From the NCBI GenBank assembly GCA_033442325.1, contig JAWQFM010000007.1, positions 706,719 to 770,718 of the forward strand: DNA of 64,000 nt, written 5' to 3'. The notes beneath the pieces were generated by a model. That model searched no databases and had not been told where the DNA came from. It worked only from the letters and a program-made list of their open reading frames with translations. This document shows, in pieces, positions 27,765 through 32,269 of the stretch (positions are counted from its first letter, which is position 1; the number at the start of each line of letters is the position of its first letter). The DNA comes from Salpingoeca rosetta (Eukaryota > Protista > Choanoflagellata). The position numbers were made by a program, and so were the translations under genes.

Positions 27765-27896
27765 CTACCAGAGGAGGGTGGCGACGTTGTCGTCCATGCT
27801 CGAGAACGACGCGCGGGGATCATCCTCTGCCGGGCGAATGTTCATGACGGGCGCGGCCGGCGCTCGCTGTGTCCCGTCGTGTATGTGTGCGTGTAT

Positions 27897-27992
<96 letters not shown>

Positions 27993-28374
27993 GTGCATGT
28001 GTGTGTATGTGTGTGTATTGTGTGTATGTGTGTGTATGTGTGTGTATTGTGTGTATGTGTGTGTTTGGATGAGCTGAATGCATGTTGTGGTTGTGTAAAG
28101 TTGTGGCGGCAACGTTACAGTTAGCCTAGGGCAACCAGCGTACCTGTACGTGCCGAGACTGCACCTGATAGTGTACAGGGAGCGAGAGCGACGCATGCTC
28201 GACTTCGTCCTCTTCATCTGAGCTCTCGTAGCTGTCACACGCAAAGGCCTCAACGCGTGAGCAACAACTGAACAACTACCAAAACATGCTACACAAACAC
28301 GCGCGCGCACAAGCACGCACTCACACACGCGCACGCACACGCACGCGCGCAAAGTTGGCATTGTGGACCGCTAC

Positions 28375-28454
<80 letters not shown>

Positions 28455-29252
28455 ACCTGTCGTAAGAGTCGGCTGGGATCTCCTTCATCTTGGTCAGGCC
28501 CTCGCCCTGAGCATCAGACCAGCTGATGCGACGCGTGTTCTGCGCACACGCACATACAAGAAGTGTGTTTTGTTTGGTGTTGTCAACATCAAAAAGAGCT
28601 GCAGTTGAGGAGCCACAACAACAACAAAACACACACGCACACAACACAGCACAGCAAACAGCACAGCAAACAGCACAAAACAGCACAACACAGCACACAC
28701 CAAGCAACACCATGTCGGCAGCACCATCATCACCTTTGCGCTGTTTGGGGGCTTGAGGATGCCGCGGGCAGGCTTCGCAAGCACCTGCTCCATCTCCCGA
28801 CGGAGCTCCAGAAGTTTTTCCTCCTTCCGAGCGCGGCGGGCGGACTTTGCGTCCTCCTGCTTCCTTCGCCGCGCCGCCGCCGCCTCCTCCTGCGCCCTGC
28901 GCTCGCTCAGCTGCTTGAGCTGGTTCTGCCGCAACTCGTCCTGCCAGCTCAGCCGCGCGCGTCGGTCCCCGCCAGCGTTAGCGTCAGCATCGGCGCCAAC
29001 ACCTCCGTTGGACGATGCTGTTGCTGTTGCTGTTGCTGACGACGATGACGATGATGATGACGGCAGTGGCGCCAACGTGTCCGAGGAGGATGATTCGACC
29101 GCGCCCCCAAGCGACATCTTGGCAGTTGGCGGCGCTGTCGATGGCGGCGGTGCACTGCCATTCGCGCCCGTTGCAGATGGAGCTGACGACGCTGCCGTTG
29201 CTGATGGTGTGGCTGTGCCGTCCCCGACCACCGCACCACCACCGTTGGCCTG

Positions 29253-29297
<45 letters not shown>

Positions 29298-30545
29298 GGC
29301 ACGCTGTTCGCGTCGCCGCTTTTGAGCGCGGATTTTCGCTCGGATCTTCACGCGCTCAGCCTTGGGCAGCATCGACAGGTCGTACTTGCTGTAGTCCTCC
29401 TCGTCCTCTTCCTCCTCTTCCTCTGGTTGCTGTTGCTGCTGCTGCTGCTGTGGCGGCTGCTCCTTGTCCTTCTTCTCCTCCTCATCGCTTCTTTGTTGCA
29501 TGTGGTAGTGTGCGTGGGGGCGATCTGTTGCCAGCGGAATTGGTGTCGGCCGACTCGGAGCCACTTCCTCTTTCGTTTCCTTCTGGATACCAGTCTCAAC
29601 CTTCACTGTCTCCTTCACTGTCTCCTTCACTGGCTCCTTCACTGGCTCTGTCTCCGCTGTTTGCGTCCTCACTTGCCCCATCTTCACCTCTCGCTCCTCC
29701 TGCTGTTGCTTCGTTGTGCCGTCAAATTCAAACGTGCGCGCCGTGCGCTCTGGACTCTCAAACCCGCGAATTTCTTCTGCCTCTGCGCCCGTCTCAGTCT
29801 TCGCCGCAGTGGTGGTGGTGGCGGCCGCGGTGGTATCAATTGACGTCGGTGTCGCTGCTTCTGCCGGCCTGGAAGTACTCACGTCCTCCACACGCTTCTG
29901 CTCCTCCTGTCGTTGTTGTTGTTGCTGTTGCTGCTGCTGCTTCTCCTCCTCCTCCTCCTCCTCCCCATTCTTCTTCTTCTTCTGCTCCCTCTGTTGCTTA
30001 TCTGCCTCCGTTGCGTCGCTGCCACTACTCGCCCTGCGAAGCGCCGCCCATGCCGGTGCTGCTAACGACGACGATGCCGATGTCGTCGTTGATGATGGTG
30101 CATCCGTCTTCGCCTCAAACAGCGCCGCCTTTGCAAAGATCCCGCCCTTACGACCCGCACTCGGCGACGACGCTGCTGCTGTTGCTGCTGTTGCCGCTGT
30201 TGTTGTTGGTGGTGCGGTAGTGGTTGCAGCTGGCTGTGCTGTTGTTGCTGTTGTTGCTGCTGTTGCTGTTGGTGGTGTGGTAGTGGTTGTAGCTGGCTGT
30301 GCTGTTGTTGCTGTTGTTGCTGTTGTTGCAGCGACTGATGGTGTCGTTGTTGCTGTGGTGGCTGGTTTTGTCTCTGGGACCGCTGTTGTCGCCCTCACGT
30401 GCGCCACCGCCTTGGCTTCCCTCGCCGCTGCCGGGGGCGTCTGTGCATCTTTTGCCTGCACCTGCTGGCTAAACATCTTCAGCCGGTCGGCAACAGACTT
30501 GATGCGCGGTGTCTCGTTCGACACAGTCGTCGATGCCGCTGACGT

Positions 30546-30580
<35 letters not shown>

Positions 30581-30781
30581 GTGTTGCTGGTGTGGAACTA
30601 CGCTGGTCTGTTGCTGTGGCAGTGCTTGTTGGTGTCGACGCAGGCTGCGGCTTGCTGTCTGCCGTTGCCGTTGCTGCTGCGGTCTTGGCTGTCGGTGTTG
30701 CTGTTGCCTCTGCTGATGCATCCATGGACCCGCGCCACCGCTGCAAGACGGACTTGGCACCTGCTGACACAAGTCCGCACG

Positions 30782-30853
<72 letters not shown>

Positions 30854-31235
30854 NNNNNNNNNNNNNNNNNNNNNNNNNNNNNNNNNNNNNNNNNNNNNNN
30901 NNNNNNNNNNNNNNNNNNNNNNNNNNNNNNNNNNNNNNNNNNNNNNNNNNNNNATCCTCATTATCGTTCGACGCTACATCATGTAGACATTGGATCCATT
31001 CACTCGACTAAGAATAGTGGCTGATATTTTTAATCTGCTCTTGTTCCATTTGTTATGATTGGGGGGGGGGTGTAGAGTCGCCTCGCTCATCCAGCGCCTC
31101 CTTCTGCGCCCAGCATCGCACATCTGACTTGCTCTTCGGTCTCTCTGCTTCTAGGTCTGCCCGCGCCCACCCCCAGCACACATTGTTTGTGTGTGTGTCT
31201 GCGCGCATCTGGCTGTTAGTGGGCAAGAATTTCCG

Positions 31236-31325
<90 letters not shown>

Positions 31326-32269
31326 AGTTCGCGGGCTTGCAGCCTTGGTCGCCAGGCCATTGGTTCGGCTTTGTGCGGGTGCCGGCGAGGATGATGACGG
31401 TGCACCGTCCACACTCTCCTGGCTGCGCTGCCGAAACAACGCCAACCGCTCGCGGACACTTGAGGTGATGGGCACGTCCGCTGCGGCTGGAGACCCGGGG
31501 CCCTTGGCACCTGATGGCAACACCCCAACCATGAAAATCAAAATCAGACAGGTGGTGGACATGACTCGACAATGAACACAAACCAGCGTGCTCGCTGGGC
31601 TGTGTGCAGGCCACAATACGGAGACAACCTGAACGCACTCGAATCCACGAACTCATACAAACACGTACGAACACACACAAACACCAACACACGCAAACAT
31701 ACACCAACACACCAAAACATACACCAACACACCAAAACACATACAAAGCAAACAAACACCAACACACACACCAACACACACACAAACACAAACACAAGAG
31801 CGATGGGGAGTGTTGGTGTTCACGAGTGCGCGTTTGTGCACGATTGTGCGTTTATGGACACAAAGACAAACAGACCTGATTGGGGAGAAGAAGACGATTG
31901 ATTGGCATGACTGGCAGGAGAGGCAAGCGTTGCCTTTGAAGGCGCTGCTGGTGTGGATGTGCCATCTGCGGCAAAGGGCGGGGGAGCCTTGCTGCCGCTC
32001 TGCTGCATGGCAAACTTCCACGCCGCCGGAATTCCGCGCTTCTCCTGCTGTTTTGAGGAGCTCTTCTGCTTCTGCTGATCGCGGGCTGCGGCCTGCGCCT
32101 CCTTTTTCATGAGGAGATCGCGCTTCCACGCGGGCAGGTGGGCGTACTTCGCAGCAAGCGCAGCCATGCTTGCACTGCCAGACTCGATCTCCTTCTGCTG
32201 CTGTTGCTGCTCCTGTTTCTTGCGGCGATTCTCCAGCAGCGCCTGCTTCCACAGCGGTACCGACGACAT
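27765..32269 (-). CDS. Phostensin/taperin-like PP1-targeting protein (interrupted by an assembly gap)
   Basis: N-terminus MSSVPLWKQALLENRRKK...HLPAWKRDLLMKK is Phostensin_N-like. The C-terminal exons give RGILK (SILK motif), RRISW (RVxF/W motif), acidic SYESSDEEDE and the tail IRPAEDDPRASFSSMDDNVATLLW*. Splice phases at 28734/28539, 28457/~28231 and ~28165/27866 are consistent. Confidence 0.72.
30854..30953. other. Assembly gap (100 N)
   Basis: Run of N. Confidence 1.

Follow-up and report, generated by a model that had tools for sequence, protein, structure and literature searches.

A candidate PP1-targeting scaffold of phostensin/taperin type encoded by a conserved gene in Salpingoeca rosetta, a choanoflagellate

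A 64,000-nucleotide stretch of the Salpingoeca rosetta genome (contig JAWQFM010000007.1, positions 706,719 to 770,718; hereafter "the window", to which all coordinates refer unless another contig is named) carries on its minus strand, at 27765..32269, a gene for a long protein with two PxWK motifs at its N-terminus and a candidate docking site for protein phosphatase 1 (PP1) near its C-terminus. The interpretation that we slightly favour is that this single gene, conserved in choanoflagellates, encodes a PP1-targeting scaffold of the type represented by phostensin (PPP1R18) and taperin (TPRN), vertebrate proteins that dock PP1 and are linked to actin. These two proteins share residues 15-107 and 590-646, the latter region being centred on the PP1-docking motif KISF, and taperin surrounds the taper of stereocilia, at their bases (PMC12139522, PMC3507197); the literature thus agrees with what the initial annotation of this DNA had said about the shared terminal regions and the location of taperin. 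The layout that the same annotation had described, a paired N-terminal motif combined with a C-terminal RVxF site, is real and conserved in choanoflagellates, and each of the motifs it listed is found on the minus strand where it had been placed, on frame-consistent exons.

According to exon borders, phases and translations, the coding region comprises six exons with a total of 2880 nucleotides (959 codons and TAG), beginning with an ATG at 32267-32269. Exon 1 (32269-31876, 394 nucleotides, phase 1 at its end) encodes the paired PxWK module and is followed by exon 2 (31510-31325, 186 nucleotides, phase 1 at both ends), exon 3 (30760-28734, 2027 nucleotides, encoding many A, T, S and Q residues), exon 4 (28539-28457, 83 nucleotides), exon 5 (28231-28144, 88 nucleotides) and exon 6 (27866-27765), which encodes the conserved tail and ends with the stop codon. 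All introns are of the GT..AG type and translation of the exons gives phases 1, 1, 0, 2 and 0 at the five junctions. The protein of 959 residues is probably largely low-complexity and disordered. Intron 2 (30761..31324) contains an assembly gap, a run of N at 30854-30953 flanked by (GT)n and (CA)n runs, which sits between the donor of exon 2 (31324) and the acceptor of exon 3 (30761); the gap is within the intron and the coding sequence is untouched. Since exon 3 calls for the single base that exon 2 has left over (phase 1), the two exons join in frame. Long (GT)n or (CA)n runs fill every intron of the gene (31240-31324, 30790-30853, 28390-28456 and the one that separates exon 5 from exon 6), and it was probably these runs that caused the gap.

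Evidence that the gap interrupts one gene comes from a relative, of which a gap-free contig of 6120 bases (L004; 37% G+C, compared with 57% here) encodes the protein P0001. All six exons are colinear on this contig according to tblastn (1203-1478, 1826-1897, 2291-3853, 3985-4041, 4191-4265 and 4480-4557), with E-values of 6e-30 for exon 1, 7e-23 for the C-terminal half of exon 3 and 3e-9 for exon 6, the tail being 62% identical and exon 2 showing 56% identity to 1826-1897. The intron phases are the same as in the window gene (1, 1, 0, 2, 0), exon 4 likewise has 83 nucleotides and encodes RRVSW, and between exons 2 and 3 there is a plain, gap-free intron of about 220 nucleotides without an extra exon. 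In both genomes the gene has a peroxiredoxin (AhpC-TSA) gene as its tail-to-tail neighbour (window 26705-27124, plus strand; L004 5441-6054, minus strand), hence the local gene order is conserved despite the 20-point difference in G+C content. Moreover, both termini occur on one contiguous protein in the acanthoecid choanoflagellates Diaphanoeca grandis (P0006, 635 residues) and Stephanoeca diplocostata (P0005, 783 residues), whose proteins are labelled "complete" on transcripts. A search with the C-terminus of P0006 added P0017, P0018 and P0019; all full-length members, including the contiguous P0017 and P0019, have both the N- and the C-terminal part, and P0019 matches exons 1, 4, 5 and 6 of the window in this order in a local tblastn comparison. 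With their order unchanged in L004 and in P0005, P0006, P0017 and P0019, the motifs are not a chance occurrence.

The alternative, in which the gap separates a short gene (exons 1-2) from a long one (exons 3-6), can draw on the run of N, which hides the real length and content of the gap, and on in-frame ATG codons soon after the start of exon 3. At least half of the words sampled from exon 3 are present in 13 sequencing runs, none of which is recorded as RNA. Against two genes, phase 1 is preserved across the gap, the plain intron of L004 lies at the same place, and both halves are found together in four contiguous relatives. Because L004 is colinear and contiguous relatives carry both parts, two separate genes are very unlikely, and we give this possibility only a few chances in a hundred. 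That there is one conserved gene, as the initial annotation had proposed, is nearly certain, and judged by its sequence relatives it is a member of a family conserved across choanoflagellates.

The C-terminal region of this family presents a constant order of elements: P-x-G-[ICV]-L comes first, then a stretch of basic residues, an RVxF-type site, a run of aromatic and acidic residues, [GS]-L-[SA]-x-P-x-H, and finally a tail that ends in LLW or MLW. In the window gene these correspond to a P-x-G-I-L-K element in exon 3 (28746-28796, with GILK itself at 28752-28763), RRISW in exon 4 (28519-28533), the acidic run YESSDEEDE (28204-28230) and the LSLPVH motif (28150-28188) in exon 5, and the tail RPAEDDPRASFSSMDDNVATLLW followed by TAG (27765-27836) in exon 6. 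RRISW agrees with the pattern of the RVxF class of PP1-interacting motifs, [RK]-x(0,1)-[VI]-{P}-[FW], and lies in a probably disordered stretch. Although overall identity is low, all six relatives with contiguous or genomic sequence retain the pattern [RK]-x(0,1)-[VI]-x-[FW], as RRVSW in L004 and as RKISW, RSIVW, RTIVW and RKITW among P0005, P0006, P0017 and P0019, and a motif-level test finds basic residues before and an acidic run after it in every relative. Of the docking pair that had been claimed, RRISW is kept as a site in relatives; GILK, which has the SILK-type form [GS]-I-L-[KR], was seen in the window species only; its place is taken by GILA in L004, GCLP in P0006, P0017 and P0019, and GVLS in P0005, and the conserved core around it is P-x-G-[ICV]-L. 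The tail ends in LLW or MLW in P0006, P0017, P0018 and P0019. Genes for PPP-type phosphatases are present in the genome, and docking of PP1 through the predicted RVxF site appears reasonably probable.

Between the termini, members of the family have at least one S-[VI]-x-x-R-L-x-x-[FL] motif, a region that varies and is either of low complexity or rich in E, R and K, and a basic helix. In the window gene the motifs are SVRERLALF (31434-31460, exon 2) and SVADRLKMF (30471-30497, exon 3), while the basic helix (29307-29396, exon 3) has a counterpart in L004 and degenerate ones in P0006 and P0019. Neither PDZ nor RPEL nor any other Pfam domain was found in the exons or orthologues. Charged words of low complexity overwhelmed a word search that used the end of exon 3, which found nothing; probing the ESM Atlas with the P0006 C-terminus was likewise without result, as were searches of PDB sequences with that C-terminus and with the alignments A1 and A3.

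At the N-terminus, the two PxWK motifs, the first of which comes just after the start codon, are 32-42 residues apart in every relative. Motif 1, VPLWKQALLENRRKK, occupies 32216-32260, right behind the start codon, and motif 2, KYAHLPAWKRDLLMKKE, with the form [YF]-A-H-L-P-x-W-K-R-[DE]-L-x-x-K-K-E, occupies 32099-32149. In alignment A1, P5, W7, K8 and A10 are invariant in the former, and L45, P46, W48, R50 and L52 in the latter. An AlphaFold model of exon 1 begins a helix at each PxWK (residues 6-41 and 47-75, with pLDDT of about 80-90) and shows disorder beyond residue 92; a Foldseek search with this model returned no match, and an ESM Atlas search with exon 1 gave weak leads alone, to clathrin light chain (0.90) and to an espin fragment (0.76). 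The idea that the PxWK motif represents the extra actin-binding site of espin was rejected, as the latter is NIYMQTKNKLRHV (PMC3953818). Exon 1 contains in addition a looser third motif, IPAAWKFAMQ (32003-32032, minus strand), which is identical in P0001 and was not seen in the acanthoecid proteins.

Single PxWK-L-L-x-R-K-R motifs, scoring 18-20 bits with the Phostensin_N profile (PF13916), occur at three other loci of the genome: G000:C11:827696-827782 (minus strand, together with C11:826763-826804, also minus), C11:1613006-1613080 (plus strand) and C23:1121867-1121935 (plus strand). About 900 bases downstream of the first of them there is a strongly headpiece-like EFNALPPWKQ. As three other loci have one, the PxWK motif alone does not define the family, and it looks like a small reusable module in Salpingoeca rosetta. 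Two database proteins carry the paired form. P0002 (789 residues, from a JGI metagenome contig of 29.7 kb) has the same paired start followed by at least 12 PxWK copies, among them a tandem IPEWKKEAM array, is without the RVxF site or the LLW tail, and with 23.1 bits exceeds the PF13916 cut-off. P0010, a fragment of 108 residues from an ENA contig of 19.3 kb, has the paired module and scores 24.5 bits with PF13916 and 18.3 bits with the villin headpiece profile; it lies beside a gypsy-type retroelement that carries a Baculo_F envelope gene, which suggests an arthropod source, and if this is correct the N-terminal module is present in animals outside vertebrates.

Whether the gene is a pre-metazoan member of the phostensin/taperin family, as the initial annotation had it, was examined with the two Pfam profiles defined for these proteins, PF13916 (cut-off 23 bits) and PF13914, the C-terminal Phostensin profile (cut-off 25 bits). 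Single exons of the window gene or database orthologues served as queries in our profile searches, the spliced protein not being searched whole, and the protein collections appear to be without records of the window's own genome. Exon 1 matches PF13916 in two stretches with 22.9 bits (E 1.2e-4), the better of which covers profile positions 6-32 of 86, and relatives score 22.5 (P0001), 23.1 (P0002), 24.5 (P0010), 19.1 and 16.9 bits. Of the two termini, only the N-terminal one thus comes near its profile, whereas the C-terminal one has no hit.

Several results weigh against membership in this family, or against the broader interpretation. The match of exon 1 to PF13916 falls 0.1 bit below the cut-off and is limited to the motif, and acanthoecid orthologues show no match to this profile. 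With PF13914 nothing was found at E up to 10 in exons 3-6 taken singly, nor in the contiguous C-termini of P0005, P0006, P0017 and P0019, and there is no candidate in the whole genome. In a phmmer search of 1.84 billion representative proteins, exon 1 had seven hits, the best of them from choanoflagellates, with neither a vertebrate protein nor any phostensin or taperin of animals among them; a profile search with the N-terminal alignment A1 likewise reached no vertebrate and no PF13916-labelled protein, and the search with the C-terminus of P0006 no vertebrate protein. RVxF patterns are frequent by chance in single sequences, PxWK motifs are present in at least three other genes of the same genome, and splicing across the assembly gap is predicted from phase and relatives rather than seen in reads. 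Because the profile results are split and no vertebrate protein was reached, we do not assign the gene to the family, and we regard common descent with phostensin and taperin as an evenly balanced question.

A different explanation, to which we assign a substantial but smaller share than to a phostensin/taperin-type scaffold, is that the gene encodes a choanoflagellate-specific disordered scaffold unrelated by descent, whose layout is an analogy, PxWK and RVxF motifs having been gained independently or being widely shared. The missing PF13914 hit, the restriction of the sub-cut-off PF13916 match to less than half of the profile, and the failure to reach vertebrate proteins all favour it, as does the occurrence of PxWK in other genes and in P0002 with its different C-terminus; also, the members known to Ferrar et al. 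were all from vertebrates (PMC3507197). What speaks against it is that a PF13916 match with E of about 1e-4 recurs in several relatives, and that the same three-part order as in vertebrates, where it is known from published domain maps rather than from an alignment, is unlikely to have arisen fully by chance: a motif pair just behind the start, an RVxF site that has Ser as its x and precedes aromatic and acidic residues, and a hydrophobic end that is conserved. A full-text literature search revealed no paper that links phostensin, taperin or their Pfam families to choanoflagellates.

If the protein is a PP1-targeting scaffold of this type, it would be a targeting subunit of PP1, working much as phostensin and taperin do: the RVxF site would bind the catalytic subunit of PP1, the N-terminal helices would bring the complex to a partner, for which F-actin is the most plausible candidate, and the hydrophobic C-terminal end, perhaps a PDZ-type ligand, might help in this placement. 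For actin association through the N-terminus, which we consider conceivable though somewhat doubtful, the relevant comparison is that of motif 2 with the villin headpiece (VHP, PF02209; 36 positions, cut-off 27 bits). Most members score 11-13 bits, over profile positions 17-33 only, and P0010 reaches E 0.0023. No full, C-terminal headpiece at 27 bits or more was found, the matches being partial and N-terminal. When a profile of 16 motifs was compared with all PDB sequences, the top 24 hits were headpieces of villin, advillin and supervillin (best E 0.03); one member of this wider set was a clearly headpiece-like motif of a different gene (L009), and no headpiece hit was left when the motif-2 profile was built from strict orthologues only. 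The headpiece likeness of motif 2 is best treated as a lead towards a possible actin-binding helix, and not as a result.

The basic helix opens another possibility, namely that the protein brings PP1 to the nucleus instead of actin, with the helix as a putative nuclear localisation signal. Its conservation in L004 and its degenerate counterparts in P0006 and P0019 are in line with this proposal, and taperin itself is mainly nuclear in HeLa cells, with a nuclear localisation signal beside KISF (PMC3507197, PMC12139522). On the other hand, motif 2 weakly resembles the actin-binding helix of the villin headpiece, and residues 1-260 of taperin, its N-terminal part, bundle F-actin (PMC12139522). 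We consider a nuclear role improbable, and placement on actin remains the preferred reading; by analogy with taperin a specific role at the base of the collar could be imagined, and this we rate as equally improbable.

Taperin is the product of a deafness gene and holds the bases of stereocilia together. The most far-reaching version of our proposal, which we think unlikely, is that the family of the window gene is the pre-animal ancestor of phostensin and taperin, that its PxWK pair is a cut-down, duplicated headpiece helix which binds F-actin, and that the protein delivers PP1 to the actin cores of the collar microvilli. If the ancestry and the collar role were both true, the origin of a human deafness-gene family that has so far been called vertebrate-specific would be dated to before animals. 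With genome editing available for the choanoflagellate (PMC7314544), the localisation of the protein and its binding to PP1 are directly accessible.

Among known systems, the villin headpiece offers a parallel to a single element of the protein. Motif 2, in the general form [YF]-x-x-L-P-x-W-K-[RQ]-x-x-L-x-K-K-E, resembles the last headpiece helix, F-A-N-L-P-L-W-K-Q-Q-x-L-K-K-E, and the headpieces of Salpingoeca rosetta itself read ...EFNALPKWKQ.... Here, however, the protein lacks the first two helices and the final GLF, carries the motif at its N-terminus and not at its C-terminus, and has one more residue between W and KK. Two villin-headpiece loci of the same genome, G000:C8:323837-323944 and G000:C8:1034347-1034454, both score 70.4 bits and have the same translation up to the stop; they reflect a duplication, either a recent one in the genome or one made in assembly. 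Spinophilin/neurabin and Phactr proteins follow the same logic as that proposed here, with an RVxF dock and, apart from it, an element that binds actin, both on a chain that is mostly disordered, but they show no sequence relation to the window gene, whose exons and orthologues are without the PDZ and RPEL domains. Taperin and phostensin differ from the choanoflagellate protein in having F instead of W as the RVxF aromatic residue, while the latter is not matched by PF13914 and has P-x-G-[ICV]-L just upstream of the RVxF site; moreover, their family has been described as vertebrate-only (PMC3507197). Nevertheless, as far as published domain maps, rather than a sequence alignment, allow the vertebrate side to be compared, the likeness extends over the entire layout: an N-terminal region with a PxWK-type motif, near the Phostensin_N cut-off; a middle that is long, variable and of low complexity; an RVxF site towards the C-terminus in which x is Ser (RRISW here, KISF in vertebrates); and a conserved extreme C-terminus, which in mouse taperin is annotated as a PDZ ligand (PMC12139522). 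The protein encoded in the window shares the build of phostensin and taperin, and it probably functions as they do.

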